Below, in pieces: positions 22,601-58,684 of a stretch of DNA of 64,000 nt. Within the stretch, counting starts at the first letter, position 1. Each line of letters begins with the position of its first letter. Both the position numbers and the translations under genes were made by a program. Source of the DNA: Eutreptiella sp. 'Long Island Sound 2002'. Lineage: Eukaryota; Protista; Euglenida. The notes under the pieces were generated by a model that saw nothing but the letters and a program-made list of their open reading frames with translations, had not been told where the DNA came from and did not search any database. The stretch lies in NCBI GenBank assembly GCA_964036045.1, contig OZ038378.1, forward strand, positions 171,430,001 through 171,494,000. Direction: 5' to 3'.

Positions 22601-23148
22601 AGGGGAGGGATGCAGCATGCACCGTTGTTGCACTGTGCCATGCATGCACACCTGTTTGGAGGCAGTCATACTAAATCTTCTAGTGGACAACCCACAGCAT
22701 CCCCCCCATTTGCTGCGGTTTCGAGCTGCCATGAAGCCCTTCTAGTGAGGGGTTAATAACCTGGCTTTACTTGAAACGTAGCACACAGTGTGCGCACTGT
22801 TCAAAGATTCCTCCAGTATCCCTCATCAGCTCCTGCTACCCTTGTCATCAAGTCTCTTACAAGCAGTGCCCAAATGGCCCTGACTGCCCTTGCTACCACC
22901 ACACACTTTCTCAACCGACCCACTTCCCCACCCATCACATGCGGTCAAAGGTGTTGTAAGTCCCATATTGCGTTAGATGCAGCTCGTTTTGAAGTCGCTT
23001 CTGGGGCAGTGTTTGCCTCTGGGTAAAAAAGAGCAGCAGTTTCAAGAGCTTAAGCTACACCTGAAAACTTCCAGGAAGATCGATCGGTGAAGGGTCGGGA
23101 CATATTACATGCTATTCTTTTGCGCCCAGTGTCTGTTCTGTGTGCACA

Positions 23149-23269: not shown

Positions 23270-23344
<75 letters not shown>

Positions 23345-38300: not shown

Positions 38301-41300
38301 TTCAGAGTGGGCAAGTGGGCTTTCCCTTGCTGCTGAACAAAGCATTGAAGTGGGGTCAAGAAACATGAATATGGGCGTTTTACAAGTGGCACTCTTTTGA
38401 AGAAGGGATGTTCAGAGTAGGCAAGTGGGCTTTCCCTTGCTGCTGAACAAAGCATTGGCTGGAGTCAAAAAGCATGGATTGGGCGTTTGTACAACGTGGA
38501 CCTTGTTGGGGCATGTTCAGAGTGGGCAAGTGGGCTTTCCCTTGCTGTTGAACAAAGCATTGGCCGCAGTCAAGAAGCATGGATTGGACGATTCCACAAG
38601 GTGAACTTTGTGGAAGAGGGGCATGTTCAGAGTGGGCAAGTGGGCTTTCCCTTGCTACTGAACAAAGAATTGCAGTGGGGTCAAGAAACATGGATATCGG
38701 CTTTTTAGAAGTTGCACTCTTTTGAAGAAGGGATGTTCAGAGTGGGCAAGTGGGCTTTCTCTTGCTGCTGAACAAAGCATTGGTTGCGGTCAAGAAGCAT
38801 TGGTTGGGCGGTTGTACAAGGTGGACTTTGTTGGGGCATGTTCAGAGTGGGCAAGTGGGCTTTCCCTTGCTGCTGAACAAAGCATTGGCCGGAGTCAAGA
38901 AGCATGGATTGGACGATTCTACAAGGTGGACTTTGTGGAGAAGGGGCATGTTCAGAGTGGGCAAGTGGGCTTTCCCTTGCTGCTGAATAAAGCATTGGCC
39001 GGAGTCAAGAAGCATGGATTGGACACTTCTACAAGGTGGACTTTGTGGAAGAGGGGCATGTTCAGAGTAGGCAAGTGGGCTTTCCCTTGCTGCCGAACAA
39101 AACTCGCAAGTGGGTCGAGAAGTTTGGAAGTGCTACTATCCATGTTGTATGTGGTTTGGCGCAGCCATCATACTTCATGGGGCACATTTTGGAAGAACCT
39201 CATGAACATGCGGATGTCTCAACATATCTGGGTTCACAAAGACTTGTGGTTTTATGCCAACGGCACGGAGGCTGGGGGGCAACGGGTGCTATGCTCTTGG
39301 CCGATGGGAAGCGCCCCCTCCGGTATACAAACAACCTATCGGAGCAGCGTAGCACCTAAGACCGGGGGATTTACTCTAGTTGGGGGAGTAGAGTTGGGTC
39401 ATTATGACCTTATGGGCTGTATCCCGACATTGCAATCATTTTTCAATTTTCCGAGACATTTGGTCCGATTGTTTCTTTTATTCCAAAGTACGTAGGGCAC
39501 AAAAGTCTTCAAGGCACAAACTCCCATGTGTTACGCAACACTAGGACCCAGCTCGGTCCTAGTTCGAGTCTTGATTGGACGTACCCACCCCAACCCTGCT
39601 GTGCCTAAGATGCAGTGCGCAGGGGTAGTCGATGGCTTCAGTACAGGTGCAAGTGATACCAGGAGGACAGCAGGGGCAGGGGCAGCATCGAATAGTGATG
39701 GGTTTCGTGCAGACCAGGAGGAAGCTGTACAGGAGGGGTCATGAAGAGCCTCTCGTCAGCCGCGAGGCGCAGAACGGTGTCTTGCTGGGCATGTTGGACA
39801 TTTTATGGGGTGCGTTGCTAACATTTGTGCTTAGAGCTTGAGCTGGGTGACGCCCATCGTCCTATTAATGGCCAAGATGAGGAGGGGTACCGACTGTATT
39901 ATTGGTGACCTGGTTTAAGGCTGTCAACATTTTCAAGTCCGATTTCTTTTGTGTATTTCTTCTCCATCTGACTGGTGCAGAACAGCGTTGTTCAACAGTG
40001 TTTCCAGCATTCACCCCTTTACGCTCAGCCACGTCACCGTCAAGTTCGACTGCGGGGTGCCTTTGGATTGCCGGGCCGTCGCGCTGAAGTTCGTGAACAC
40101 TGAACACGACTCTCAGGTGTGCATTTGGTGCCCCTCTGAGGGCTGCTGCCCGGGTCTCTGCTAATCTGCTAATCTGCTGAACACGAGAGCCACAGTGAGA
40201 GCGGTGTTGAGAAGTTGATGAGCCTTGGTGGAGAAAGTCTCCCTTAGGCCAAGCCCCCTCTCTCCCTGTCCCAAACCCCTTCCCTCCATCCCCATCCCTG
40301 CCCCCTCCTCCTTCTCACTGGAGCCCAGATGTGTGATGTATGGCCCATGCAACATGCCTGTCCCGAGGCCTCGTCACGAAAAAGTGGCGTATCACTCCAG
40401 CTCTTGGCAGCCCGCTAGGTGCCTCACTTACCTGGGTCCTTGGCTGTAGGAGCTGGGGACCTTAACCACTCTGCTCCTGGTCTAGGCAGGGCAACACTCC
40501 TTAACTGGCACCGGGAGCAAAGCTGAAGGTCCCAAACACTGGCTGAATGCCTGCCCAAAGGTCGTGGGTTTGTCACCAAGGTTTGACATTGATGGCCGCT
40601 TCAGGCAACTGCAGGTTTACCGCTGGTGTGCTGGGTAGCGTGGCGCAGGAACCCCATGCTGTCCATTGCCCTGAAGCAATTGCCTCACCTTGATGGTTCC
40701 CACTGCTGCAAGGAAATGCAACTGCAGGATAGTCAAGTGCTTCCAACTGAATCGAGGGGAATCAGCACATGGTGCAGGATAGTCAAGTGCCTCCAACTGA
40801 ATCGAGGGGAATCAGCACATGGTGGAGGGCCCAGTGCCCCTCGTTGAGATCTGGCAGTTCTGGCCCTTGGGGGTCAGTTGTCTTGCATGTAACCAGGGTT
40901 TTCATTTGCAGGGCACCCATTGAGAAGTTTCCCAGAAGACTATCGGCAGAATGAGGAATACTGATAAAATATGGGCGAAACTAGGAAGCTTCCCAAATTC
41001 TGGAAAAATCATGAGAAACAACAATGAAACATTGGCAAAAGGCAGTTTCGGTGTGTGATGGGTGTGATGAGGGTGGGTATAGTGAGTTGTGATCTTGAGA
41101 AATGGGGGGGAATGGGATGATGGCAACATGGAGCATGTGGGTCTCTTTCCATAATGCTATCTTTTTTGGCCCATGTTTGTGACCGTGTACTGTGCATAAT
41201 TACAATGGGTTGCGTTACACAGGTTGGGTATTGGCTGGCTGCCCTCCAAGCAGATGACTCATCTCAACACTGATTCGCATAGCTACCTATTTCTTAAAGG

Positions 41301-44300
41301 GGAGTGCACTGATGCTCTTAAGTATGAGTGATATGATTTGTATTGCTGCCTGATTTGATGCTTTCAAGGTGGAGTTGGGTGTTTGTTGGACACAACACCA
41401 ATTGGAGGGTTCTGAATTGGTGGGCAGGAGTGCCAACCACATGACCTGTGTTGTACATTGTTACATTGTTCATTGTTACATGCCATGGTATTGCTATCCC
41501 TACCACTGTTGCTTTCCGTCCCTCAAGTGGGTGCGGAATGCATGACAATAGACCATGAATTGTGACAGTCACTGTGAAGCTACGTTGTTGCCATGATGTT
41601 GCGGCATGAATGCATTGAACCCCATCATTTGGTGTTCTTGCATGTCTTGGTTGTCAAAGGCCGGCCGCAATAAGTTTGTAGTCAAGGATGAGACCTCTAA
41701 CCATCGCTGGGGCCCATCAGGTTCCTCGCTGTGCCATGCCCAAATGCCAGGCATGCCCAGGTACAGTTCTTTCCCCGCATTTTCCCACAGGAATGTTATC
41801 AGGAATTTTGTCACTAGCCCGGTTGGGAAATTTTGTTCCTTGGACACCAGAGCCTCCCCCCCCCCCCCCGAAGGCATATCTCTGCCTCTCAGAGCTGCTA
41901 GTGTCAGCCAGGGGTGTGGGTGCTGTGGGGCAGTGTGGAGTGCACACCTGGTACAGAGACAGATTTACTGGCCAGCTGCAATAAATCAGGACTGTGGACA
42001 GACCCTCTGACAGACTGCCCTTGACACTGGACCTCGGACACTCGGCATGTCGGGTTTTTTATTCCGGGGGGGGGGTCAATAGAGCCCCCCAAAACTGGGG
42101 GGGGGGGGGTTCGGGAAAAGGGCTCAATCGACAGGCACCATTAATCAGTCATTATGAAGCCTGGCGCCAAAGGCGCCGAAAAAATTTTTGAGCATTAAAA
42201 TTGGTCGATTTTTTTTACACCAAATATATGGCAAATGATGCTTTTTCTGAACCCCCTCGACGCGCTGATTCCAAAAATCCCATTTCCTTTTTTTTCTGAT
42301 TTTTGGGTCTGGGGCACCTCCGAGGCCCGGGGGTCAATCTCGGTAGGATTTTGGGGGTCCTGTCAGTTGAGAGCCTTTTTTTGGGGGGTCCGGCCGGAGG
42401 GCTCTATTGACCCCCCCCCCCCCCCCGGAAACGAAAACCCGGCCTCCCCTGGCACCACAGCTTCACGAGAGGGTCAAGGTCTGTGTCCCGCAACCATCGA
42501 TGTTGAGATTGCATATGTACAATGAACCAATCTGGATGCTTTGGGCAGCGCCTTGGGTCACAAATCGTAACATTGCGTCTCATGCTAAACAAGCAAGGGT
42601 ACAACCAGTGACAGAGGGTTGCATAGCCAGACCTCTGCTGCGGCGTTATCCAAGGCATGGCACAAGCATTTTGCACTGGGAAAGCGGTGAGCCATTATGC
42701 TTCACTGAAAGAAGCCGCTGGGCGCCTCCCCACCACGGGGGGGGCGTCTCCTCGATTCGCCCCCCCCCCCTCCCCTCCCTGCCCTCCGGGCCCACTTAGT
42801 TACTAAGGGTCAATGGCTACAGGCCATACATAGGGTCGCGCCGAAGGCGCCCGAAAAATTTGTCCCCTTTTCTGGGGACCCCCGAGAATGCGGGGGTTAG
42901 GTAGCATTTCCGCCCACTTGCGGGCCCCCAAGAAGGCAGGGGTGAGGTAGCCAATTTTGATTTTGAGGTAGCCACTTTTGATCAGAGCTTTTGAGCGCCA
43001 GATATCGCAAGACGAGGCGCTATACAAATGTCGTTTGTTGCGAGGTGCTTTCCAGCGGAAGATTAGCAAGACGGGCCGCTATACAAATGTCGTTTGGGGG
43101 TGTGGGTGCCTACAACCACCATTGCACTGGTGAGGAGGTAGAGTGGAGGCCTCTGTTGTTGTAGAGTAACCCCTTAGGCCACCGCGTCTCTGCCAGACTG
43201 GACTAGACTCTGCTAACCCTCTCCCCTAGCCCCCCCCCCCCCCCTAGCAACTAGCAGTGACTAGCTAGTCCCCTAGAGAAGCCCTCCTCGGCGGCTAGCC
43301 CCCCCCCCCCCCCCCCCTCTTTGGGGCCTTTGGCCCACTTCTACTGGGGGGGGCGGGTCGCGTCTAAAAGCGAGGAGACGGCCCCCTGTGCACCCCACTG
43401 CAGAATAGGTCTCAAGCAGGTTGTGACAAGGAAGCAGGGTCAGCATTAGTGTGCATGCACAGGATAAGCAATGAGTCATAGAGCCGGATCAATATGACAC
43501 ATGCCACGGATAAGACACACAAAAAAAAGTGCAGTGTCTTGCAGAGAAGCTGGTCAGTAACGTTCTGCTTCAGTTTCAGCAATGTCCTCCTCATGCTTGC
43601 CTGTATGCCTTCATGCACTGTGCTTTGCAGAGGCCACACAGGGTGTACATGCGGCTGCGCACGCCGACAAAGGCCACTTGTCTTATACACAACACAGGCA
43701 AAGTGATCGTTCTTGGAGCCCGGGTGTGTGCTTCCAATTCTCCCTGGTATCATGGTCCATTCCTTCTGCTACAACCGACAATGCGCCCAGTAAACAGTTA
43801 CCCCTCCCTCCAACGTGAATGCAGTCATAGCCAGCTTGTCCAGGGAATGTTTTTGCATTTCGTGCCACTGTGGGGTACTGGCTCACAGCTCTTGGCTTTT
43901 ACCCTCCAAGCGTGGTTTTTACGTGCTAGAGACTATACTGTGGCCCAACATGTGCATAGAGGTCCTCATGCCAGAGACTGGGTGTGTTGTGCCTGGAAGT
44001 GCACACGGTGCACACAAAGCCTTCCAAGAAATTCCCATGGGAGGGAGGATTGGAGAAAGCAGCAAAGTTGTGGCACAGTGCATTGTAGGCCCAGCACTTG
44101 CAGGGGACACAAAATTCTCAGAGCACAAAACTTCAGTGCAACGTATGGGAATGGGAGACTGGCATCACAGTAATGGTCACCAGAGCGCATGCGCTGGGAT
44201 GTTTTGAATTGTAGGGCCACAGGAATGACAGTGGTCAGTATTGGGCTTTGCAGCCCACACACTTCCTGTGTATGCAGTGTGCACATGACAATTGCTGAAA

Positions 44301-47300
44301 GGACCTAATCTTGGCTTCAACAGGGAAGCCTTAGGGACCTTGAGAACGCTTTTTACGCGCCACAGGGGAAGGGTAATGTGCTGAATTGCAAACTGTCACG
44401 AAATACAAGCTGGCACAGAAAACATCGTGCACATCGTTTTGTTGGCATCATCATTCTCTACAAAGGAGAGACTCTTTCGCATATGCCGTGCATGTTGAAC
44501 CCACCCTTTGACTGTGGAGGCGGAAGCATCACAGCCTAAATGGGTGAGTTTGCAGTCATATATGGTTGTGTGAGTGTGTATGCCCCCTGCAGTATTGGGG
44601 TTTCCAAAGTGGAGAGCAGTGACGTGCCTGCGTAACCCTGTATCAGGCTGTATCAGGCTTCCCAAGGAGGAGGGGGTCGCACAGAGTAGTTTTACAGGCA
44701 CTTTTTTCAAACACCATGCGCACCATTTGTGAAAAGAAGAGGCCAAGTTGTCCACCAATTCAATATCAAAGACAACTACACTTTCGTAGACAAACAATGT
44801 TGACAATTTCCCTGAAACCCTTAACCTCTGTGTACAGAGGGAAGTACCAACCGGCACACTGAGCCTTTATGGCACCCCCCCCCCCCCCCATCTGGACCCT
44901 CAACATATACCAATGAACCCTGTAAGCCGAAGCAGTCTCTCGAACCACGTGTATTTAACCCCCCCTCCCCCCTCCTGACAATGTAAGTAGTGCATTGCCT
45001 CAATTCTGCATTTCATTGCTATTTTTGCTTCTGTTTGTTTGTTCAACATTCCCATCAAATTGTAAGTTAGGTCTCACTAGCCTCTTCCGCTCTTAGACAA
45101 TTACCCAGAACTGACCCCGACGAGCAAGCAGCTTATCCAAAAGCCATGGCACGAGGCACCAGTTATACAACACGGTTACCTACTGGCTTTCATGGGACCC
45201 CCAGTCTTTAGATGCACACTTTGCCCCTGCCATATTGTTCCCAAACCTCCTAGCTCTGTATGCATCAGTTCTGGAGAACACTATCCGAATCTCATGGTTA
45301 TGGTAATGACCGCATGTGGGCCTAATTAGGCCGACAGAGAAGTGGACAGGAGTGGACACCATGGGGCTAGTATGCTGCAATGGTCGTGCACTGAATATTC
45401 CATTTTGGCCAACAACCCCCCCCCGCCCCCCGCCCCCCAAATCCCAACAACACAAAGGACCTTGGTGGCCTGTAAGCAGACCAATTTGAGGGATGTGTTT
45501 GTTTGTGTCATGGGTAATGGACGGACCTGGCTTTTGAAAAGTATCCTGCTCTGCACTGCATGTGCTGATGGCCTGCTCCTCCCTGTTCAGTCAGTGCAAG
45601 CTGCCAAACAGAGTGCGCTCAGCTGTGCCAAGATCCTGCACATCATGCAACCAGCTGTGCAATTCCTCGATTACTGCGTTATAAATATGGTATGCAATGT
45701 GGATATGCCTGGGTTCATAGCTGGAGGGTGTAGAATCAGTACCCAGTTGTCCCAATGTGCACCACCCTTCTTCCGTTTGGGCCATTCTTAAGGGTGGAAG
45801 CCACAACGCCTTTGGAATGAGATTTCCAGCCATGCAGCCCAAGAGGGAAGCTGGTTTTTTTCTAAATTGGACAGATTTTGGGCTTCTTTGACCCGTTTTT
45901 GGGGACTGCTCGGAGGTTGAAACTCTTTTGCTTTGGCATGAACAAAGGAAACCGGTTCAGTATATTGAATACAGTATACAGTATACTGACACCCATGTCT
46001 TGTGGTTTGGCTGGGGGGTTTGCTGGGCTGGAATGGAGGAGTCAGCTGTATTGTGTTTTCTTCGTTTGACTGTCAAGTTTCAAATCGTCAAGTTTCAAAT
46101 CCCCATGAAATTCTGACGCTTGTAGCAACTACGAGCGAAGAATGGGACAAAGCTTCACACCAAACTGCAAGCGCTTCAGCACCAAGCACAGGTGTAGCTA
46201 CATAAACGTTTCGTGCCCATGGCAGTCCATCACCACAAGGGGAAAACAACGCATCAAGATGGAACGGACCATGTTTTTTGAAACAAACACTTTGACAGTC
46301 TGGTACAACAGGTAACCTGAAGGCATAGTGAGCGAAGTACTGGATGGCAGTCAGCGCACGTCATTCAGGGAGCAGCGGCGGTTGATGCTCAACAGATGTT
46401 TTGGATCTTACAATGACCCAAGCTTCGTAGGTTAATCTGACAATGAATGGTCAACACCATCCGTTAATCACCAACCGCTGTTGTTTCCCAAGTGCCGTTG
46501 GTTACCTGCTGCCCAGTGCTTCGCACACTGTGTTTTAAAGGTTTCCGTTGCACTGGCCACAATTTTTTGCCCCCTTCTGGATCTGCTCCCTCTTAATGGG
46601 TAGCTACCTTTGTTGTCCCCCTCCTCAGCCAGCATGCTGAAGCCTCTTCTCATATGCGCAAGAATTGGGCCCTCAGCCTTGTGTCGCTGTCTGGTTGCTG
46701 GTTGCTGAGGGATGATGCCTTTACGACTCACTTTCCAGGTGGCATTTTACTATGTGGGGCATCCCATTTGGTTGGAGGAGCTGCAGGCGGCTCACAATGA
46801 AGTGGCTATTTATGATGCCCAGATCTTCAGTGCAGTGGTATGCCTGCTTTTCCTTGTGAGATTCTTTATCAGGGCAGCTCGCCATGCAGGACACAAGTGC
46901 ATCATGACTTCTCCAGTATAAAAAGTGCATGCATTTTTTTTGGTCATACCCCACGATTCTAATGGCATATATAGTTCACCCCATGTGATACCTGCATCTG
47001 GTCCTGCTATGGCTCATGCTTGATTAATTTTCCTTAACCAACACCTGAAACGGTTGCCAGGGTTACAGGTGTAGTAAGGGAGATCATAAGGGCAGGGCGC
47101 TGTTCCAAAAGTGATCTGGGGGCCAAGTGCGCATGGCCAGAAATGCCAGAAATGCATGTGGGCACTGCTTCGAATGGCAGCCATTTCCCAGGCTCCCCTG
47201 TAGGGATGGTGGGTGCAATTTCACCCGCCCGCCCAACAGATGGGTCTCTCCCGTGCAATTGTCCGCCAAAACAAACGACAGCAGAGTTTGTGGAAGGGGC

Positions 47301-50300
47301 GAAGGTATTCGGCTGCCAGTGGTGGATTGATGTGAAGATGGGGTGAGTGTTGGGGCTATGTGGTGGTGTGGGCCCAGTGGTATGGCTGATGTCTGACGGG
47401 GAGAGCGCAAGCTCTCTCTGCAAGACGGGCAACATAGCCTCCCTCTGCAAGACGGACAAGATAGCCTGCGATAGAAAGAAAGAAAATTGCATGAAATGGG
47501 TCAGTGTCCACAGGAGTAGAGGGGAAATCTGTAATTGGTTCCGCCACTCCAGATCGGAAGGACACTGCACACCTGGGGGGGGGGGGTGCAAATGAGGACA
47601 ATGAACATGCAGGGGGGGCACCGGACAAATGTGGCAGCACACACAAACACACACAGGACACACACAGGCAAGAGTATGACACAATACCACTGTGGTTTTG
47701 GCACCGAGCCCGTGCTCATCCCCGCTACTCCAGCTGCATCCAATGGGACGGCTGCAGAGACCTACAAATGTACATAGCACCGCATCACTATGTCATCCAC
47801 CCCCAGAACAGCTGGTAACCAGCGTGCCTCTTTAACTGCTTGTTACGGCATGTGGTACTGATGAGAGTACACAGTCACTCAGATATGCGTGCAACATGTG
47901 AGCCTGTGGTTTCTCTTTTTTCTACTTTGCATGTAGGATCTAAGCCTTCACCTACGTGTGTGTGTGTGTGTGTGTGTGTGTGCAGGCATGTTCCTTGCCT
48001 GTGCTCTTTGGCTTTCGGGGGTGTTCTGGGTTCTTGCATTGTGTGTGTGTGTGTCTCCTACTTCATTTTATGTATCCCATCCAGATATGCACGTAGTGTG
48101 GTGATCTAGGGGATTCCTCCACAGGCATGTGAGTAATGCTGTGGCCCCATAGCTATTCCTCCCTCCTAGGTCAGGCAGTGGGCAACGGGGACGCATATGG
48201 GGTCATGGCATACCTTTGGCAGAATATCCCGCCCCTCTATGTGCTATCCGGTGGGCTTTGGGAGGGAAGTAGGGACCGCCCCCCCCATTTTGGGTTCGGG
48301 AAACACAAAAATCATGTTTTAGAAGTGAATAGGATGGTTATCAGTGGGTATTTGCCCCTATAAAGGGTTCACGGTGGCTAAAAATAGGATATGACACCAC
48401 TACTAAGATCCCAACCAAAGTACTAAAAATAGGTAAAATTGTGGTCCAAACCCCTAATACTAGCCCTTTCCACCCCCAATATTAGGTTGGGGGACATCGA
48501 AATGGACAAGGGTACATGAAAAACTCTGAATTGCTATGTTATTGGCTGTATCTAGGGGTGGTGTGGGTTATTTTTAGTACTCTGGTTAAGATCCAAGTAG
48601 TAGTGATGTCATGCTCTATTTTTAGCCATCATGACCTCTTTCACGGGCAAATACCCACTACTAGCCCATTATTTGTAAAACCTTTTTTTTTTGGTTTCCC
48701 AACCCCAATATGGGGGGGGGGGGGGGTCCCTACTTCCCTCCCAAAGCCCACCCGATAGCACATACAGGGGCGGGATATTCTGCGAAAGGTATGCCGGGGA
48801 CACTTATGAGCACGCTCATGACTGCCATTGATGGTTTACACTAGACACCTTCCTTGCTTCATTGCTTTAGAAAGGCACCTAGCCTCATGATATCCTAGCA
48901 CGATCATTACTTCTTGCTCTACTTTGTTTTGCTTGCTCATTGGCCTGATGAGGTGTTCACAGAAGTGACAGACCGGTGCTCTTTGTGCCCGTTGTGCAAG
49001 TTGTTCCGTCGTGCAAGTTGTTCCACGTGTATCCACATTGGGAGGTTGTGTTTGCCTTTTGCCGCACAAGTGTGTGGTGTTGGCACATTGCCCATGACTG
49101 CTTGGCAGTGACGTTTGGCTCTCTAGTATTATGCTGCTGGAATTACTTCATGTACCCCTGGCCGTGCTGTTGCACCACCGCGCAGTACTATCCGGTGCTA
49201 TCATTATTGTGGTACGGCAGCAATAGATGCCACCGCCGTGGCTACTACTCGGTGTAGGGCCCCGAGGTGCCTAGCAGCAATGCTACCCGCCATGGTGAGC
49301 GCGGCCCTCCCCGCTCCCATTGCTGGACATGCAAATGAATCCCAGGTGCTAGTCCCCATCGCCGGGGAGACCAATATCTTGAGACGTGCATGACATAGCA
49401 AAACGGGTAACAGAAACAAGCGAAGTCAACCGTGTCTCCAATGATTTCTTTGTCACTCTTTGATAATTTGATTGAGTCTTGGTTGTTTAGACGAGGCAAA
49501 CGGCGATTTGTGTGCAGCTTGCTCCCGATTTCGAGACATTTGTCAATTCTCCGTTTGCCATTTTAGAATCCATGGCAATTTCCCACTCCTCCTTTGATGT
49601 GTACGTCACAGGCATGAGCCACGCTGGTTGCAAGGTGCCGGAAGGAGGGAGGGATATCACAATGCTTCCACGTGTCTCATGGGTGCGACTTGAGGGCATA
49701 TAGTGATCGAGCCTAACCACGGAGCCACTAGAGGCTGTCAAGGCTTGGGCTCATTTGGTCTATATAGGGGTCACTGCATCAACCCTGGTCACATGCCTTA
49801 GGAAACAACTGACGCCACTAATTTTCAAGGCTGCTCCCACCGTGTAGCGGCCTATTTTCCAAGTAGACAAAACAAATGGGGCATACTTGATCCCAAGTAC
49901 ATGTGTGATGAATGGCTCGCCAACATCCGCTAAGCATCATTGGTGCCATATTTTTAAGAAGTGGGCATGCAACGACGTCCCCCTAGCATTAGTGCCAACG
50001 GCGATAGCAATAAATCACGGGGCTGGCTAAACTCGCGGGTCTTTATAGTCCTAAGACCTCGTCCTAAGGGACTAAGGATGCCAAGGCGATCCTTGACTAT
50101 GTGCGCCTGAACTGGCTTCTAGACAACCTGCATTACCTCGCCTCCCGGCTGTTTGTGCCCCCATACATAGTAGAAGTATAATGGCACCTAGCATTGAACC
50201 AAGGCAAAAGTCAGCCATCCACACAGCTTGCAGGAAAAGGCCCAATTTTAGTTGTGGGCCCAACTTGGGAAAGGCAGACCCTCAATAAGCCCGTTGTCTG

Positions 50301-51679
50301 TGGCAACCCAAAAATTGTATGTAGAGGATTCAACAAAGAGGCTGGAAAATATGATAAGTTGCAATCTCAAACCCCTTACATTTCGCCAAGCCATGGACAT
50401 CCCACGGGTGCACATGAAGATGGATAGGTCACGTGGCTCTCATTCCTATTGCCATTTGGTTCCTAGATGACTTATTTGTGACCTAACAATTGTGTGCCTC
50501 TTATAGGATGTATGGTATAGGTCCCACTACTTGAATATGTGTCAAACATGGCACAAATATCCTCTTTTCTTCCCCCTTTGCACTCTTTCCTCCCACCTTC
50601 CTTGTAGCCAAAAACTACTACCTGTTTGAAATGTATATTGGTCTGTACAGCGAGGGTCGGTGAGCACTTCTACATGCACACGTTCGATAACGGGAGGGGT
50701 CATGTGGGCATTTTGCCGCCACTGGGTACGGGGGGAGTGTTTCCTGAAAGATGAGGGTTACCCTGAGGCCATCATGCCGCCGGCCGTGGCCACACAAAGT
50801 ATCCGCCGTGACATTCTACATCAGGGTTGGGAGCAAAAATTTGTAGGCCAATTGGCCGTCTTATACTTGGCTGGGAAGGCAAAAAGTTTGACAAAAGTTA
50901 CCTTGCTATGGCGCAGCATCACTCCCCTCCCCCAACCATTCCTCGCCAAGAACTCTCTTAAGGTTGCTACCAGAGCCAATACTACATTCTTGCACCCTCT
51001 CAGCGGTGAAATCCCGTGCACTTTCATTGCACATAGCATCAATGATGTGGCGGCTTGGTACCATTAGCTTGAAAAAATTGGCTACGTTGTATTAGTGAAG
51101 TGGGCAATAAACATTAGTTCCATGACGTCAAACCCAAAGCAACATTTTTCGGAAGCAAGTCACCAGCTGGCAAAACACCAACGATAGTGTATGCATGAAA
51201 TCACCCAGTCCACGATCATTGCTTCTTGCTCTGCCTTATTTTGCTTGCTCATTGGCCTGACGAGGTGTTCAGGGAAGTGAAGACTGGTGCTCATTGTGCC
51301 CGTCCTGCATTTTGTTCCACATGTATCCACATTGGGAGGTTGTGTTTGCCTTTTCCCACACAAGTTTGTGTGTGTGTGTGTGTGTGTTTGTGCAGCAATT
51401 GGCACTCCTCATCTGTGCTGTTCGGACTTGTCATGTTTGATGCTGCCTTTTCTACCCTCATGGCCTGCAATAATTTTTTCGCTCAAGTTTGAAGCTGCGA
51501 CATATTTAACATCCTCAGGCTAGTATTTCAACAAGACCCAGGTGCCAGTTGGGAGTTGCAACTTGTGCAGTAGGGGCCCGTCAATTACGAAAAGAGCATG
51601 GCTAGTATTTGTTGGATTTTCCATTTGTTGTGTGTGTGTTTTTGTGCGTGTGCTGGGTTTTGGTCGCCTTGCGTCATCT

Positions 51680-51711
<32 letters not shown>

Positions 51712-54700
51712 GCCAAGGTATGTATCCCATATTGCAAGGACCTGCCCAGATTCACAGGTGCCCACAGGGCGTTCTCATGACTCGCGTTTGTCGTTCTTGT
51801 TTGGGATCGGAAGGCCAAAAATATTGGGCATGTGCTGTCCGCTACCAACAGAATAGCTAAGCCCATGAAAAAGCACCATTGCTGTTCACAGAGGCGACCA
51901 CTAGGTTCTGACAGGAATCGATTTCTCAACCAAAATGTTTATGCTTTTTCATGCTGCCATGCACTTGTGTCCTGGATGCTGCTGATTTCAGGTTGGACTG
52001 TATTGCCACGGAAAATACTGATGCAGTGTAAGACGCAGCAATGGTGCAAACAACAAGCGCTGTGGGATGCCCGGCCCGCCCACCCGCGACAAGACCCGGC
52101 GGGAAAGTGCTCGTGGTGGTGGTATACGTGGTGACGAGCAGTAGTGGAGGCAGTAGCATATCTACCATTGTACCATCTCGCTTGACACCATTCAATAGAC
52201 CTACGTCCTATTCTCTGACAATACCTAATCAGCACAATTGACGGATAAATATACTCGGTTCATAAGTCTCGTTCATGGTATGTACCTAATGCTAAGTGAC
52301 ACCTTGTTTAATGAATGAATTTCAGTGCATATTTCATGCTATTATCACATCAACAAAATTGTGCGGCACCAAGAATATCAACGCATGCTACACTAGCTAT
52401 GCACAACGTCTCCTTTTGCCTCTTAGCAATCAAGTAAAAAAGAAAAAATCAGAACAAGAAAATAACACATCGAGCAACAGTAGTTTACCTATTTTACACA
52501 AAGCAAAAGCAAAGAAAAAAAAAGACAAAAAAAAATAAAGGATAACCCAATTGATGTCATTAGCTTTGTGACTAGGCTTGGGAAGGACTCGCTATGCTCC
52601 TCCTTCCCAAGCCTACAAAGGCCGAAAGTATCAGAAGTTTCGCCGCGTACGTTTATTACGCTGATTTTAGTTGAAAACCATGATTAAAAAACCCGATTTT
52701 CAGGCAAAATGCGTTCAAGGTGGCCTATGACCGGTCCCCATATCTCGTTACAATACCTCTTCACCTTTCAAACGAGCCCAACGGTTCGTTCCAACTCAAC
52801 GGTATGATGGAGAACGACCTCCGACAAATGGGACCATGAACTCCAAATTGCTACTTTTCACCAAAATGCAAAACCCCCATTGCTTATAACTCCGGGCCAA
52901 CGGGGCTTGAATGGGCAAACAATTGATCTTTTGCATTCTTCTGGGTCCAAATAACTCCATTATGCTTGGTTGAGGACTTGGTTACCTATGTGCTTCCAAC
53001 CTAACTACGTGCCGACGGGTACACGTTTTGACGTGGCAGGGTATGCACAACATACACCTGATTTTACCTAAAAATGACCACCAAAGATGCAATTTTCGCA
53101 AGAAATGGGTGTGAGACGGCCTGTGACGGGTCCTATTATCCTTTTAGGACATGTTCTCAGCTTTCAAACGAGCCCAACACTTTGTTCTAACTCCACGGTA
53201 TGTTGGAGAACGAGCTCCGACGAATGGACCCACAAACCGAAAATGTCCATTTTTGACTAAAATGCGAAACCCCCGGCTGATATATCTAGGGGCCAATGGG
53301 GGTACACCGGGCAAACTAATGGCCTTTCCCCTCCTTCTAGGTCCAAACTACTCAAATATGCTTGGTTGAAGTCCCAAGGAAGCATGTGGATGCAACCGGA
53401 ACTCCGGGGGGGAGACCCATGATTTTGGTACGCAGGTGTTGTGACAGCACCCAAAAACACAGCTTAAAAAGCACGTATCTTTGAGTTTTCGCCCCCATGT
53501 GCTCTCTATAGAGGCCATAGGGACGTAACATTGCTTATACCCGTTCCATTGGACCCATACGGGACTAGTTTGCACAAAGGTTGAATCTCTAGGCCGGGAT
53601 ATAGCACTTTGACAAGGCTGTACAATGGAGACAGCAACCTTATCTAAGTACTGTTTTTTTCTACCTTTTGTACCCTCTTTCTAGGCATCAAGAGGAGGCT
53701 AGAGGGATCAACCTTGGGCATTTTCACATCATTTGGATGCAAATGAACTTGGATTGTCACTTGGTTCGTTGCTAGACCCTCGTGGTTTCGCTACAACAGG
53801 CCTACGAAACAGGCCAAAATGGCCAAACTGAGCCTACTGTATAAAAACCTAAAAAAATCATATCTTTGGCCTACCGGCTCGAATTTTGATAAACCGAAAG
53901 CCAAATCTGGGTAGTTTTTGACGCTGAACACGAATATTGAGTCAAAACGTCGGCGTCGAACAGCCTGCTGCCGGAAATCGACGATCGGTGTTCCGAAACA
54001 GTGATTCGTGCAGTTTTGCGAAACACCGATTTTACAGCATTATTCGGGCTTTAAAACCCTTCACATTCATGGTCTTAAATCGAATTTTCGTCAACTCTAG
54101 CTAGGTGCTGAGTTCAACAGGAGAAATGTCGGCGACAGCCATTGGTCACGCGTGCGCGCCGATTTTTGACCAGAAATCCGGATTCTGGCCAGTAAAAAAA
54201 AATCCCCGATATACAACCTTGTAGGGCCCGTCCTGCCATCCACAAATGTGCCTTCGGTTCGTCCAGAACTTCGTCCGTTGCCACCATTACGGCAGGGCCA
54301 ATCCGGCGGGATAATCACCGGGGTCAGCTTTACAGCTGAGCGTCGCAGGCGGCCGCGGAGGCCCCTCCCCCGCGGCCGGACAGCGAACGGCGGGCCTCAC
54401 GGCCCCGGGGCAAAAATGCATAGGAGGTTGGGATGGGAATGGCCATCTGAAACACTGCAAGATTGGTTTGATTGGGACCTTCCAAAAAAGGGATCATTAG
54501 TCCAGGCTGATACAATACACAAATACACACACACCGTTCGATGTGCATTGATTTTCTGCGTATGTGCGTGCGTGCGTGCGTGCGGATGGGCGTGCGTGCA
54601 TTTGTGCATGTGCATGGAAATCCAGAGTTTCAACAAGTATACCCATTGTTCTTGCTCACGTGTGTGTTGAGCGAAATGCTCATTGCTGGTGCTGGGTATT

Positions 54701-57700
54701 TAATACGGGAACCGGTTTTTTTTTTGCAATGATTCCCCTCTTTACTTTGAGCGAAATCTAGGTGCATCTGTATCCCATCCATCTGCACAGAGGTACAGGC
54801 TCATGGATCCGAAATGCCTCTGTCATGTCTTCGCCAACGGCAACATCACCATAACCGGTGTTAAGGTATGGCTCCGGCTGCAAGGGTCATGTGCGGTTGC
54901 ATGGATTTGGGGTTTTTTCGACCGCACATGCGCATGTGTAGTAACCAGAGGCACCTTTTGCCGGGGCAATGCAGGAATTTATGTCGCTAGATGTTTGTAC
55001 AATCAATGCGGCTGAGAAGCAGCATGGATTTCAGCCTTCCTTGCCAGCTGCTGTCCTTGGATCCGGATCCCTGGATGGGGTGCGGGTCAGAAAGGCAACT
55101 CAATTTCGATCCAACAGCAAAAAGAGGAGCATGCAGAACATGCGAAGAGGCAGTAAGGCATATTACTTTTGGGGACCGGGTTGCAGGTGCTAGCCACATG
55201 TTGGTGAGTCTGTTTTAGTTAGATGTTTGATGTCATAGCAGCGAGCGCTCGAGGACATCTTTTTTTTTTCATGATCTGACTCATTGCTTGTGCCTGTGTG
55301 CGTGCGCACGTGCACGTTTGCACGTGAAGAAGTTGGCCACACATCGTACGATGGGCACAGCTATTTAGCACATATCGGCAAGAATTAAAGGATGCGTTTT
55401 GTCTCCCTAAGAAATCAAAGCAAACCATGACTTCACAGCTTTCACACCCACCAGCCCACATGCCTCTTATGCCCACGCTTCCAGGCTAGACGCTGCAAGA
55501 CGTGATTGTGCACCCTCCTGTGGTCACAACACCCCCAAGACCACCAAACACCACTTCAACCAAGGCACAGTTGGCATTGGCAGGGGTAGAGGCAAGTGGT
55601 TATACCCTAGGGCTGGTTTTTGTGAAGTCAGACTTTCACTTGGGGCACAGGGGGTCAATAGAGCCCCCCCAAACACTGGGGGGGGGGAATCTGGGAAAAG
55701 GGCTCAATTGACGGGGAGCATTATTTCCATTGGAGGTGAAGACCCAAGAAGGAAAGTTTTGTCAAGTGGCCTGCTGCAAAAATATCCATGATGGACGCAT
55801 TGCCACCACATGCTCCTAGAACGATACAATGTATGGTTCTCCCCAGGGTATGTGCATCAAGCAGTAAGTATGCAGTTACCCTTGTTACCTAGGTAGCTTG
55901 AGAGTTACCAAGCTGGGTCTTGCAGTGGAGGTTTTACAACCCATTTTGCGGTTGAGCAATGTAGTTTAGTAGCAGCAAGCAGCAGCAAGCAGCAAGCAGC
56001 AGTAGCAGCAGCACGTAACAGGCGGTTCAAAACTCTTTGTGGGGGTGCCGTGGCTCAAAAATGGCGTCCAAGTTGCTCAAAATGACCGCGGAGGAAATGC
56101 GCATCACCTAAAATAAGTTGTGTGTGGGTTCGAGGCATCAAGCCTGTTTTATGGACGATTTAATGTCCAAAAACGGCCATTTCCAGCGTATTTTCAGGAT
56201 GATTGCCGTGGTCCCATGTGGTGGTCTGTTTTGAGGTGAAAATGAGCAGTTTGTTTTCCGACGATCGTCCTGAAAGTCCAGAACGACCACCAGTGTGTCC
56301 TGTGAGCGTCTCCAATGAGGGCTGTTCTTCTTCCATGGCAATTGGGCCATTGGGCTATCAAATGATCAGTCAAAGTCGCAACTCTTGATAACACTCTTTA
56401 GGGTGCGGGGTGGAGAGTATGAAGTGCAATAAAACAAATGCACACCAAGCTTCCAAAGCACTTCAAAGAGGTTGTTAGATCAAGTGCAGGCGGGTATTTT
56501 AGGGTGGTATTCACATAGCATCCCCTGAGGGGTTAAATGTCAGACATTTTACATGTAACATCATCATTTTATGAGACAAAAATATCCCCTGAAAAGTTTT
56601 TGAAATTTGGGCCTGCCAAATCCCTGAACGGACCACCGACTTTTTTGGGAGGGCAGTCAAAAAATTTTTTCTTGACCCTCCCCCGGTTTTGCTCAGGACC
56701 GCAGATTTCTTGGATTCCTTTGATTCGAGGCCCAAAAAGTTTTGGACCTCGTTGTATAGGGACTGGGGACTTTGAGCAGTTTTTAGGCTGTTCAGTGGTA
56801 TTTGAAATTTTTTGAATTTGACTTTTTCCAAGACCCTTTTGTGGGCTCTCGGATGCGTTTGGGTCATCATTTGGTGACATGGGTACTCTAGCACCCATGG
56901 GGACCCACATAGTGACTGCTCACTCAATGCAGGCAGGACCATGGGCCCCGAAGCCCCTGCTGTTTCAGCCTGTTCAGTGGCAATTTTCCAAAAAAAAAAA
57001 GGCCACTGCAACCAGAAATTGTTTTCAACAATTTTTTTTTGAACACAAGAATTTTTTGAACAAATTTTTTTCCAACAACAACTTTTCCAACAAAATTTTT
57101 TTCATACAAAAAATTGTTTTTCTACACCAAACATGTTTTCGCAACAAAAGTTTGTCCCCAACAAAAATGTTTTGGAAGAACAAGTTAATTTTCAGCAACT
57201 AATTTCTGCCAATGGAATTTTTTCCACCAAACCATTGTTTCATCAAAAAAATTTTCTGACAAAAACTTGGTGTTTCCAGCGAAGAATTTTTCTGCAAAAC
57301 AAAATTTTTTCTCAACAACAAATCTTTTCCATCAAAAAATTTTGGAGTAAAACTTTTTTGGACAAATCTTTTTCTAACCAAAACTTGCTGTTAAAATTTT
57401 GTTGCATCCAAAATTGTTGCAATAGAAAATTTTTCCAACAAGGAGATTTTCCAACGAAATTTTCTCAACCAAAATTTTTTTCGTAAAAACACTTTTTTCC
57501 AATAAATTTTTGCCCAAATAAAGAAGTTTTTCTAACTGCTGTTTTAGGCTGTTCAGCGGCATTCTTGAAAATCTTTCTGTGTGCTGGGAAATGGAAATGG
57601 GTCGCTGGGTGCTTTGTTTGCTAGGAATTGCACAGGTGGCAACACCACGATTTATGTGTGCGGTATGTTTGCCAAAAAAAATCAGGTTTCCCTCAGGCAT

Positions 57701-58684
57701 GAGACCATTCCAAATACGGCAGGATTGTAATCTTGGACCCGGGGGGGGGCACCTCTTTGAGGTGCCTTGCCATAGGCGATAGAATTTGGCATCCAGGGCT
57801 GTCCTTCAGGAACGAAATTTTGTTTTCTGTGAAGAAGCAGGATATGGGTTTAGGGTGATTACAGCTATCTTGGAGCTGAGCTTCTGGCGCCAACTTGGAA
57901 TCCTTGTGCTGGACACCATGCAACACGAAAGAAAGATGATGTATGGGAAAATAAACAAGTGAAACCGGAAAACACATGATCGGTTTCCAAGCCAACCGGG
58001 CACCCCATCTGGGTTTTTCCGCATCAAAGACCATGGTGCAGACATCTTTGCCTCTTTCTGCAGACCGCCACAGATATTGACAGTGCGGTCGCACAAATCA
58101 CGGCGATAGTCGGCGAGCATGTGCTGCCGGAAGCGCCCAAGGATGGGGAAGAAGCCGATGCTTATGAAGCGTCGCGTCCCCTTGCAGGCTTTGAAAGTGC
58201 ATCAGATGTGGCAGCAACTTGCAGCCCCAATCATGTGTACAACGGTGCCTGGTGCAACAATCTTCAAGCGCCCAATGCAGGTGGCTTTGATGCTCTGCGC
58301 CTGGCTGTGGTACCCAATCACAACCAGCATGGGCCTGGTGCTGCAGGCGGCCACAGTTTGCAGTCGGTGGGCACTGGAGGCCACGATGCTCAGCCCCAGG
58401 CCCGCGGGCATTCCGTCAGCCTGCATGGGCCCAGTTCTGCTGGTGGCTGTCATCCGCAGGTGCTCTGTGCGGAACAGAGCAATCTGCAGGGACATAGTGC
58501 TGCTGCTGGCTGTGATGCTCAGCTCCAGGGCATCAACCCCTTGGGCGCCGAGGCTCCGCATGATGACAGGGATGAGGACTGTGGATGGGGAGATAACATC
58601 AACGCAGACGCCTTGTTGGAAGATGCGCTGGGCTTGCGGTGGGACTTGAACCCTCTTGGAGAAGAAATGGAAAGCGCAAGCTAA
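23149..58684 (+). CDS. Divergent TATA-binding-protein-related factor (TBP/TRF fold) with N- and long C-terminal extensions, 9 exons, 448 aa
   Basis: Core exons: 40008-40116 (IHPFTLSHVTVKFDCGVPLDCRAVALKFVNTEHDSQ), 43631-43723 (RPHRVYMRLRTPTKATCLIHNTGKVIVLGAR), 45591-45689 (SVQAAKQSALSCAKILHIMQPAVQFLDYCVINM), 46739-46837 (VAFYYVGHPIWLEELQAAHNEVAIYDAQIFSAV), 54791-54865 (RYRLMDPKCLCHVFANGNITITGVK) and 58064-58684 (TATDIDSAVAQITAIVGEH..stop). These join in frame via GT-AG and align nearly gap-free to both repeats of yeast/human TBP. Upstream exons 23149-23265, 39713-39776 and 39835-39904 are phase-compatible but have no homology support and are less certain (especially exon 1). Total 1347 nt. Confidence 0.85.
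23270..23362. repeat. (TG)n-(CG)n microsatellite at the start of TBP-like intron 1
   Basis: Direct inspection. It begins 4 nt after the GT donor at 23266. Confidence 0.97.
24595..24770 (-). repeat. ~30-bp minisatellite, reverse-complement relative of 7686-7992
   Basis: Unit close to CCCACCAGGAAATAACAGCAACCATCCAGAA, versus the reverse complement of the 7.7-kb unit, CCCTCCAGGAATTAACAGCGGTCATCCAGAA. Confidence 0.75.
26546..26625. repeat. 33-bp pyrimidine-rich tandem repeat (2.4 units)
   Basis: CCCTCCCTCCCTCCGTGCCTCCTCGCCATCCTT repeated. Confidence 0.85.
28011..28849. repeat. 423-bp tandem duplication in the Helitron 5' non-coding region
   Basis: ACCACACCGTGGCTCAAAACCGGC starts at 28015 and 28438, and the two copies are nearly identical. 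Confidence 0.95.
29003..29281. repeat. 93-bp tandem repeat x3 (partial fourth copy near 29395-29480) upstream of RepHel
   Basis: GCTCGCAACACC starts at 29003, 29096 and 29189. Confidence 0.95.
29643..37337 (+). CDS. Helitron RepHel (HUH Rep + Pif1/SF1B helicase) with C-terminal C2HC finger and J-domain; one in-frame TGA at 31755-31757
   Basis: ORFs 29442-31757 and 31770-37337 are in the same frame and separated only by one TGA. It has a DUF6570-like region (LPELTDLEERMLGR..RGHAISVPHD..WLRVLKVINPEY) and Rep motifs PSLFYTVAP, YECQGRGSLYFH, KYVVGYCSK. Helicase motifs are AGGGTGKS (34929-34952), LIVDEVSMV, FGGMCVVLMGDFVQLTPV, LVKQHR, TYHGVQC and YVGISRVR. It ends with the J-like YLKLSVQLHPNK..AYNLLKD. 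It may be a recently disabled copy. Confidence 0.93.
30114..30502 (+). repeat. In-frame coding minisatellite (36-48 bp) giving 10 copies of (K/R)EDKQRAGQAG(S)
   Basis: Seen directly in the translation of the RepHel N-terminal part. Confidence 0.95.
37480..39110. repeat. 105-110-bp satellite array (15 units) with higher-order ABC structure in the Helitron 3' region
   Basis: Core GTTCAGAGTGGGCAAGTGGGCTTTC occurs at 37541, 37646, 37756, 37866, 37970, 38080, 38190, 38300, 38410, 38515, 38625, 38735, 38840, 38950 and 39060. Confidence 0.96.
42049..42443. mobile_element. MITE-like element, ~395 bp, imperfect ~90-bp terminal inverted repeats
   Basis: GTCGGGTTTTTTATTCCGG(G)nTCAATAGAGCCC..GGGAAAAGGGCTCAATCGACAGG on the left mirrors CCTGTCAGTTGAGAGCC..GGGCTCTATTGA(C)nGGAAACGAAAACCCGGC on the right. 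Related copies are at 62392-62762 and 55630-55720. Confidence 0.75.
48207..48795. mobile_element. Foldback/Mutator-like MITE with ~225-bp terminal inverted repeats
   Basis: GGCATACCTTTGGCAGAATATCCCGCCCCT.. (48207) is mirrored by ..AGGGGCGGGATATTCTGCGAAAGGTATGCC (48795). The flanks GGGGTCAT / GGGGACAC match 6/8, a possible decayed 8-bp target-site duplication. Confidence 0.85.
48899..51370 (+). mobile_element. Decayed retroelement-like remnant bounded by ~170-bp direct repeats
   Basis: Direct repeats at 48899-49075 and 51211-51370. The interior ORF 50660-51067 has LYLAGKAKSLTKVTLLWRSITPLPQP, resembling the Y-x3-K..RPI..P segment of Penelope-like/non-LTR reverse transcriptases. No intact catalytic DD motif was found. 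Confidence 0.4.
52735..53375. repeat. Diverged tandem duplication, ~396-bp period, within a hairpin-bounded module
   Basis: CTTTCAAACGAGCCCAAC at 52765 and 53161, followed by shared ACGGTATG.TGGAGAACGA.CTCCGAC and ATGCTTGGTTGA blocks. Confidence 0.8.
55630..55720. mobile_element. Solo left-end fragment of the 42049-type MITE
   Basis: GGGGTCAATAGAGCCCCCCCAAACACTGGGG..GGGAAAAGGGCTCAATTGAC. Confidence 0.7.
55883..56385 (+). mobile_element. Diverged left-end fragment of the Helitron family at 27870
   Basis: TGTTACCTA..ACCAAGCTGGGT..GAGGTTTTACA..(CAG/AAG)n..CCGTGGCTCAAAA..GACGATCGTCCTGAAAGT..GGGCTATCAAATGAT is collinear with 27870-28270. No matching right end was found in the window. Confidence 0.85.
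56980..57530. repeat. AT-rich degenerate low-complexity array (A/T runs, CAACAAAAATTTTTT-like units)
   Basis: Direct inspection. The apparent F/K/Q/N-rich ORFs here are artefacts. Confidence 0.85.

Follow-up and report, generated by a model that had tools for sequence, protein, structure and literature searches.

The window analysed here is a stretch of 64,000 nucleotides from the euglenid Eutreptiella sp. 'Long Island Sound 2002' (contig OZ038378.1, positions 171,430,001 to 171,494,000 of the forward strand). It contains a gene that encodes a member of the TBP (TATA-binding protein) family, whose gene structure, expression and fold family are established, and the surrounding DNA is eukaryotic, with about 50% G+C. 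The protein has the two-repeat saddle of TBP, but the residues with which TBP reads DNA are mostly changed in repeat 1 and mostly kept in repeat 2.

Structure of the gene

The full gene has nine GT-AG exons between 23149 and 58684 (+), with a coding sequence (CDS) of 1338 nt for 445 amino acids. It spans about 35.7 kb and has eight introns of 262 to 13,292 nt, each GT-AG and with matching phases. The protein consists of an N-terminal region of 87 amino acids, the two-repeat saddle core (residues 88-262) and a tail of 183 amino acids, which has an acidic end and, going by the paralogue, is mostly disordered. The first-pass annotation had placed the gene at 40008-54865. This interval does hold the core exons, with their GT-AG borders and matching phases, but these are only five of the nine, and exon 4 starts at 40029. 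Once spliced, the five core exons are collinear with the TBP core, apart from one extra residue in the S3-S4 turn of repeat 1. The three upstream exons were found by a tblastn search of the window with P0174, the product of an intronless copy of the gene at L002 (described below). The features are as follows, residues being compared with those of yeast TBP.

23130..23148 (+), probable 5' untranslated region (UTR), beginning at the trans-splice acceptor cccag/TGTCTG, as inferred from the retrocopy L002
23149..23265 (+), exon 1, start codon and 39 N-terminal codons; residues 1-39 of P0174 match by tblastn at 59% identity; donor GAG/gtagct, with L002 DNA collinear and an alignment break at the exon end
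26329..26381 (+), exon 2, 53 nt; borders ttgcag/AGG and GGG/gtatgg, fitting phase; L002 10115-10171 aligns
26644..26736 (+), exon 3, ending in N-W-S-L and the TG of a split Cys codon; P0174 residues 58-94 match at 62% identity; donor GTG/gtgtgc
40029..40116 (+), exon 4, S1-H1-S2 of repeat 1, with H89 at the position of N69 and T91 at that of V71; RNA contig X4 record 16, ungapped yeast TBP register
43631..43723 (+), exon 5, S3-S5 of repeat 1, with P119 (F99), H137 (F116) and L145 (T124) in the motifs RPHRV, LIHNTG and IVLGAR; Pfam TBP, alignment to TBPs of the PDB, RNA joints on both sides
45591..45689 (+), exon 6, helix H2 of repeat 1 and start of repeat 2, ending in VINM, where N180 is N159; RNA contig X1 record 7, GT-AG borders
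46739..46837 (+), exon 7, H1'-S2' and the C-terminal stirrup, reading YDAQIFSAV, where F211 is F190 and S212 is P191; sequence, phase, collinear L002, tblastn with P0174
54791..54865 (+), exon 8, S3'-S5' of repeat 2, with H226 (L205), F228 (F207), T234 (V213) and T236 (T215) in the motifs HVFANG and ITGVK; Pfam TBP 25.5 bits, PDB TBP E 5e-5
58064..58684 (+), exon 9, helix H2', the 183-residue tail rich in Gly, Ala, His and acidic residues, and the stop codon at 58682-58684; translation, RNA runs X1-X4

The 3' UTR extends to at least 58876, and the alignment with L002 is unbroken over 58062-58876, which shows that there is no further intron. At the other end of the gene, L002 carries a spliced-leader relic followed directly by a homologous 5' UTR and ATG, on which the UTR start at 23130 is based. 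The gene model is independently supported by the intronless frame of L002, which is equally long and aligns in order with each of the nine exons, the breaks in its alignment with the window coinciding with the exon junctions.

Evidence from RNA

Two RNA contigs cross introns of the gene. The first (X4 record 16) has a joint 40113->43628 with zero mismatch and starts at 40028, after 22 letters that could not be placed on the window. The second (X1 record 7) has a joint 43722->45590, again with no mismatch, and extends 2 letters past 45689, which match exon 7. The small offsets of these coordinates are due to bases common to both sides, the true joints being 40116->43631 and 43723->45591. The contigs confirm the joints 4-5 and 5-6 and are consistent with the joints 3-4 and 6-7.

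Since the first contig lies on the window only from 40028, exon 4 starts at 40029; that exon 3 ends in G explains the placement of the contig one letter earlier. The TG of exon 3 and the C at 40029 form a Cys codon, so that the mRNA reads W-S-L-C-H-V-T-V. The motif 'LSH' of the first-pass annotation must therefore be corrected to L-C-H, 'LS' being intron read-through. Starts of exon 4 at 39981 or 40008 were considered and are ruled out by the RNA contig and by the exon 3 (26644-26736) that the paralogue indicates.

The retrocopy L002 differs from the window by about 13% in the exons covered by RNA, and the contigs show no mismatch, which indicates that the RNA derives from the window gene. The runs X8 and X10 cover the introns evenly and are therefore DNA runs. 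The spliced contigs establish that the mRNA carries the repeat-1 exons with H89, P119, H137 and L145, so that the case which the first-pass annotation named as refuting its finding, other exons restoring the phenylalanines, does not apply. Nor is there an alternative TBP-like exon elsewhere in the window.

Between 51 and 61% of sampled words from the exon 9 region (58062-58684) occur in three estuary metatranscriptome runs, and 17% in a fourth, so that the alga, a very close relative or its RNA is present in those samples. Searches with the tail exon, of the protein collection as well as of metagenome contigs, returned only the window's own open reading frame (ORF) and one low-complexity match.

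Family membership and fold

The searches of databases, structures and the protein atlas used single exons or the paralogue P0174, and the spliced product was analysed locally. Taken alone, the exons 43631-43723 and 54791-54865 match Pfam TBP (PF00352) with 24.1 and 25.5 bits, respectively, for a cut-off of 22.9 bits. Exons 5 and 8 also align to solved TBPs of the PDB at the corresponding repeat positions (exon 8 with E 5e-5, at chain positions 135-158), and the language-model atlas look-up with exon 43631-43723 gives TBP in 94 of 100 matches. No match was obtained with exons 4, 6 and 7 alone against Pfam, or with exon 4 against the PDB, these queries being short and divergent. A profile of the two homologous exons, searched against 1.84 billion representative proteins, finds 530 proteins at E<=1e-3; the best 150 of these are mostly two-repeat TBP alignments, and every named or Pfam-annotated one that was checked is a TBP.

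Against our own hidden Markov model (HMM), built from 98 ordinary TBPs, the spliced core reaches 153 bits (E 5e-48), with 63.6 bits for repeat 1 and 76.8 for repeat 2. The assignment to the TBP family made by the first-pass annotation is thereby upheld, both by Pfam on single exons and by the HMM check of the spliced core that it had proposed, and chance is very far from explaining the agreement. The paralogues P0174 and P0152 each show two Pfam TBP stretches (104 and 75 bits).

The superposition on a TBP-DNA complex, also proposed there, was carried out with P0174 as a proxy, which is 74% identical to the window protein in the core. The AlphaFold model of P0174 (45-row alignment) has a confidence (pLDDT) above 90 over the core 85-262, with the expected order of elements, S1-H1-S2-S3-S4-S5-H2, twice. 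Foldseek superposes this core on the human TBP-DNA complex 1cdw_A with a TM score of 0.93 and a root-mean-square deviation of 1.6 A. The tail of P0174 is predicted to be disordered but for one short, weak helix (420-430, pLDDT about 60) within its acidic-hydrophobic end.

Residues that read DNA

In yeast TBP, E186, E188 and L189 belong to the stirrup that binds TFIIB, and K138 and Y139 contact TFIIA. In the window protein the stirrup reads Y-D-A-Q-I-F (E186D, E188Q, L189I), and the positions of the TFIIA helix are, by alignment, K138S and Y139C.

As a checklist for the DNA face we used 15 base-contacting positions of TBP (PMC12209930). In repeat 1, N69, V71, F99, L114, F116, V122 and T124 correspond to H, T, P, L, H, I and L, and in repeat 2, N159, V161, F190, P191, L205, F207, V213 and T215 to N, V, F, S, H, F, T and T. 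Base contacts are thus unchanged at one of seven positions in repeat 1 and at five of eight in repeat 2. One of the repeat-1 changes, V122 to I, is conservative, and repeat 2 is altered too (P191S, L205H, V213T). As to the four intercalating phenylalanines (F99, F116, F190, F207), the repeat-1 pair is replaced by P119 and H137, and F211 and F228 are kept. The Asn/Thr pair of the minor groove is represented by H89 and L145 in repeat 1 and by N180 and T236 in repeat 2. The combination expected of a canonical TATA-reading TBP (four Phe, the Asn/Thr pair in both lobes, the TFIIB stirrup) is not found in this protein. The losses F99 to P, F116 to H, N69 to H and T124 to L, which the first-pass annotation had pointed out, are indeed there in the sequence, in GT-AG exons and in the RNA; so are N159, F190, F207 and T215 of repeat 2 (exons 6-8) and the change of the stirrup from YEPE to YDAQ, in exon 46739-46837.

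The contact patterns of the proteins compared, repeat 1 being followed by repeat 2, are:

Canonical TBP: NVFLFVT, NVFPLFVT
Window gene: HTPLHIL, NVFSHFTT
P0174: NCPVHIL, NLFTHFTV
P0152: HTPVHFI, NVFSHFNS
Euglena mutabilis: NVHLWVM, NVFGMFGT

The four Phe positions are occupied by P, H, F and F in the window gene, P0174 and P0152 alike.

Intronless copies in the same genome

The proteins P0174, P0152, P0020 and P0175 all come from the ENA assembly ERZ25074135, in which the contig bearing exon 9 matches the window with 100% identity along 2564 nt. In a local BLAST of the spliced product, P0020 and P0152 are 59% identical to it, and P0014 39%. P0174 has 445 amino acids and is 71% identical to the window protein over 361 residues, tail included. 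It is encoded by an uninterrupted ORF (L002:10001-11338) in a retrogene that extends over L002:9952-11338 (ctg10613). On its 5' side is the relic of a Euglena-type spliced leader, and then a 5' UTR with homology to the 19 nt that precede the ATG of the window gene. The uninterrupted frame, the leader relic and the alignment breaks at the junctions indicate that P0174 is a processed retrogene, and as such an independent record of the spliced mRNA. P0174 has Asn at the position of N69; His is ancestral in the family and was reverted by a change of CAC to AAC. A dinoflagellate origin of the DNA was considered and rejected: a search of the window itself for spliced leaders of dinoflagellates or Euglena gave none, the relic in the retrocopy matches the Euglena-type leader, and Euglena mutabilis is the nearest relative. 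Retrocopies are frequent in this genome. At L002:11650-12110, 3' of the retrogene, lies a minisatellite whose units resemble GGTGGTGTAAA.

The copies of the P0152 type are also intronless, but they begin 19 nt inside intron 3 of the window gene and have no counterpart of exons 1-3. There are at least three such 5'-truncated copies in 15 kb of ctg10241, two of which overlap in inverted orientation:

L003:6001-6972, truncated family copy
L005:3001-4188, truncated family copy
L006:3001-3546, truncated family copy

The start of these copies bears on one further element of the window:

39981..40028 (+), 3' end of intron 3, an in-frame read-through ending in IHPFTLS, homologous to the start of the L003 intronless copies

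The DNA homology of L003 starts at 40010, 19 nt within the intron, and P0152 matches the window by tblastn at 71% identity over 40003-40116. There is no RNA cover of 39981-40028 in X4. To judge from the sequence, this may be an alternative acceptor region.

In P0175, an ORF among these truncated copies, a part resembling the RNA polymerase subunit Rpb4 runs straight into TBP repeat 2.

A euglenid TBP clade

The only TBP retrieved from another euglenid is that of Euglena mutabilis (EukProt EP00669 P014609, P0153/P0014 cluster), whose JGI name is TFIID TATA-box-binding protein. Like the window protein, it has two Pfam TBP repeats, an N-terminal region of about 80 amino acids and an acidic-hydrophobic C-terminal end; its repeat 1 has lost both Phe and T124 (H, W and M instead), and its repeat 2 keeps N, V, F, F and T. 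It differs in that it is only 39% identical, that its repeat 1 keeps N69, V71, L114 and V122, and that its tail has about 45 amino acids, as compared to 183. It may be an orthologue or an old paralogue of the window gene.

In a quick LG+G4 tree of 107 TBP cores, which includes only this one outside euglenid species, a clade with support 100 unites the window gene with P0174 and P0152. This clade is sister to the cluster with the E. mutabilis TBP (SH-aLRT 95), and the two together form a euglenid TBP clade apart from other eukaryotes. The E. mutabilis TBP also lacks the repeat-1 Phe pair, so that the one-sided loss of Phe predates the split; the lineage of the window additionally acquired N69H and V71T. 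Since E. mutabilis shows the same loss and Kipferlia (below) a similar one, the one-sided saddle is a trait of the lineage and not a peculiarity of the window gene.

The short branch of the window gene in the tree (0.035) was considered as a sign of strong constraint, but a count of 10 window-specific against 17 retrocopy-specific changes rules this out. Word-based searches with P0152 and P0153 returned only their own clusters and are uninformative on other euglenid TBPs. We found no paper on a euglenid TBP.

Likeness to other divergent TBPs

The trypanosomatid TRF4 (also called TBP), to which the window protein is likened here by description, is a TBP-family factor of euglenozoans with spliced-leader (SL) trans-splicing and TATA-poor promoters. 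Ruan et al. reportedly noted in 2004 that several of its TATA-contacting residues are not conserved. TRF4 is described as serving as the TBP at the promoter of the SL RNA and at others, where it acts with SNAPc, TFIIA and a divergent TFIIB (PMC8190864, PMC2679053). Its genes are intronless, unlike the window gene with its eight introns and its long C-terminal tail. No TRF4 sequence is present among the named or checked matches of the best 150 of 530.

The animal TBPL1 (TRF2, TLF) also belongs to the TBP family, has altered Phe positions and acts independently of TATA. The four Phe positions are Y, W, H and F in sea-urchin TBPL1, and Trp at the second Phe position of repeat 1 is a conserved signature of TBPL1 (PMC7221094). 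Contrary to the window protein, TBPL1 has changed Phe in both lobes, keeps N69, has no long tail, and is a proven paralogue beside TBP. The tree places Diadema TBPL1 in one loose, weakly supported group with the window gene (support 88), but outside the euglenid clade, and its residue pattern differs from that of the window gene.

The TBP of Kipferlia bialata shows the same one-sided pattern, with N and H at the Phe positions of repeat 1 and F and F in repeat 2, but it keeps N69, V71, V122 and T124. In Giardia TBP three of the four Phe are missing, as are 10 of 11 other base contacts, and DNA is bound in an unconventional manner (PMC12209930); its losses span both lobes, and Kipferlia and Giardia are unrelated to the window clade in the tree. 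The TLF of the dinoflagellate Crypthecodinium cohnii, from a lineage with SL trans-splicing and without TATA boxes, lacks the phenylalanines that wedge into TATA (PMC5029490). All four Phe are replaced in dinoflagellate TLF, which belongs to another supergroup, whereas the window protein keeps the C-terminal pair (2/4).

Selection on the coding sequence

The ratio of non-synonymous to synonymous substitution rates (dN/dS) between the window gene and the retrogene L002 was obtained by the method of Nei and Gojobori, with an overall dS of 0.21:

Overall: 0.83
N-terminal region: 1.3
Repeat 1: 0.41
Repeat 2: 0.87
Tail: 0.93

For the core, the changes were polarised with L003:

Window lineage: 12 synonymous, 19 non-synonymous, omega about 0.47
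Retrogene lineage: 11 synonymous, 29 non-synonymous, omega about 0.78

The 12 synonymous changes among the 31 of the window lineage compare with about 7 expected. Overall neutrality is not rejected by a hand chi-square on the counts (p about 0.3). The dN/dS test that the first-pass annotation had put forward against neutral decay gives a mixed answer: the ratio is about 0.5 on the core branch of the window gene, but the pairwise value of 0.83 is not significantly below 1.

The two 445-codon frames are both open, all 16 splice dinucleotides are intact, and the window gene and the retrogene differ by only two indels, in frame and of 3 nt. In a simulation, 214 random changes keep the frame open in 0.2% of trials. 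The intact frames, the splice sites and the in-frame indels argue against plain decay. Our reading of these sequence comparisons is that the protein is kept but fast-evolving, the strongest constraint lying, oddly, in the 'degenerate' repeat 1.

Possible role of the protein

We give an even chance to the idea that the window gene is a copy of the ordinary, already lopsided TBP of the lineage, rather than a special paralogue beside a canonical one. In such a euglenid-specific TBP clade, the N-terminal lobe would have lost its DNA-wedging Phe pair first, and the window lineage would then have lost N69 and V71, the C-terminal lobe keeping N159, V161, F190, F207 and T215. A Phe wedge that kinks the DNA could come from the C-terminal lobe only, and the contacts to canonical TFIIB (E188 to Q) and TFIIA (K138/Y139 to S/C) are probably altered. 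By analogy with the TBP-related factors of TATA-poor organisms, such as trypanosome TRF4 and animal TRF2/TBPL1, it may be that partner proteins place the protein on TATA-less promoters, instead of a symmetric read-out of TATA. The roles put forward in the first-pass annotation, among them recognition of a half-site, TATA-independent action and a function as decoy, are hypotheses.

Several observations weigh against this reading. The RNA contigs have a low depth only (3.8-4.7), and the protein collection has no transcript-derived protein of the window gene. The constraint is weak for a general transcription factor, overall dN/dS being not significantly below 1. The divergence of the CDS (16%, 214 sites) is close to that of the 3' UTR (20%), and of the 15 DNA-contact positions, 6 are not the same in the window gene and in P0174, which is no better than the core average. 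The structure model is that of a paralogue that is 71% identical, so that the fold of the window protein is read by proxy. Last, a second, canonical TBP could lie elsewhere in this very large genome.

The window gene could instead be a specialised, fast-evolving paralogue beside a canonical TBP, as the first-pass annotation had supposed, serving only some of the promoters, or one special condition, in the way animal TRF2/TBPL1 does. The family is multi-copy and fast-evolving, as specialised duplicates often are, and the low RNA depth and the absence from transcript-derived protein sets fit this view, as does the identity of 39% to the TBP of E. mutabilis; the stems on either side of that split are long, which could reflect an old duplication and not a divergence of species. 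The absence of a match in the protein collection says little either way, since the collection consists of ORFs called on genomic contigs, from which intron-rich genes escape. No canonical TBP of this organism was found, the whole genome not having been searched, the E. mutabilis TBP is itself one-sided, and trypanosomatids, which of all Euglenozoa are the best studied, are described as using TRF4 as their TBP (PMC8190864, PMC2679053). All considered, we regard a specialised paralogue as rather unlikely, if the strongest of the rivals.

Still less probable is a duplicate under relaxed constraint that is heading for decay; it would be transcribed and spliced as before, although dispensable by now, and its repeat-1 losses would be drift. 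The dN/dS values overall and in the N-terminal region and the tail, the neutrality that is not rejected, the similar divergence of CDS and UTR, the contact residues that are not specially conserved among the copies and the frequency of retrocopies in this genome would all be expected of such a duplicate. It does not account for the intact splice dinucleotides and 445-codon frame, together with the frame of the retrocopy at 16% divergence (joint chance about 0.002), for indels that are only in frame, or for the excess of synonymous changes in the window-lineage core. Moreover, the older L003 copies have H89, P119 and H137 too, and E. mutabilis likewise lacks the Phe pair, so that the loss is old and stable and not a recent decay. 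The least probable of the four readings, in our opinion, is a decoy or scaffold, that is, a saddle without useful DNA binding which titrates or bridges the partners of TBP; in a variant of it, the acidic helix of the C-terminus may bend back onto the concave face in the manner of TAND1 of TAF1 on yeast TBP (PDB 4b0a). The base contacts changed at 6 of 7 positions in repeat 1 (the conservative V122 to I included) and at 3 of 8 in repeat 2 would agree with this, as would the acidic-hydrophobic helix that the model of the paralogue places at the end of the long tail (residues 420-430), and the similar end of the E. mutabilis protein. On the contrary, the C-terminal lobe of all three copies keeps the Phe pair, the Asn and the Thr, apart from T215 (P0174 has V there and P0152 has S), and E. 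mutabilis keeps them all, which is hard to explain without contact to DNA. The canonical partner-binding residues (TFIIB stirrup, TFIIA helix) are changed too, the tail has a dN/dS of about 0.93, and its helix is predicted with low confidence.

A bolder proposal, which we consider unlikely, is that euglenids would run all nuclear transcription on a TBP with a non-wedging N-terminal lobe, the window gene being the working, intron-bearing copy of the sole TBP and promoters being recognised by one Phe pair and partners; the retrogene P0174, which regained Asn at N69, would also be functional and would differ in its DNA preference.

Among the start-site factors of eukaryotes and archaea, TBP is the one most conserved, and a form that has lost half of its DNA face may show how promoters are found without TATA. 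What is new here is a complete gene model for a euglenid TBP, a small family with an SL retrogene, and the one-sided loss in two lineages of the Euglena type. The effect on the field is modest, since divergent TBPs that have lost Phe are already known from trypanosomes, Giardia, dinoflagellates and animals (TBPL1), but a TBP with one Phe pair makes it possible to test one-sided bending of DNA and placement by partners.

Other elements in the introns

Near the end of intron 3, the segment 39413-39439 (+) reads ATG followed by G-C-I-P-T-L-Q-S, close to the opening G-I-V-P-T-L-Q-N of the TBP core. As a start exon it was rejected: it has no in-phase donor, and there is an out-of-frame ATG 9 nt upstream. 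This unexplained look-alike may be what is left of a former first exon, or due to chance.

A large Helitron-type element (30000-37340, +) lies wholly within the 13.3-kb intron 3, on the same strand as the TBP gene, and has an open frame of more than 1300 codons that ends near 35702. Between it and exon 4 is a satellite (37482-39101) of about 15 copies of 110-nt units, with a higher-order period of 325. A long (GT)n microsatellite is found at 23270-23330, a few bases after the exon 1 donor. In intron 4, the region 41900-43500 consists of very high-copy repeats, for which the summed depth of the contigs from DNA runs is 10^4-10^5, compared to about 30 in the flanks; these repeats show many variant joints and are covered by RNA runs too.

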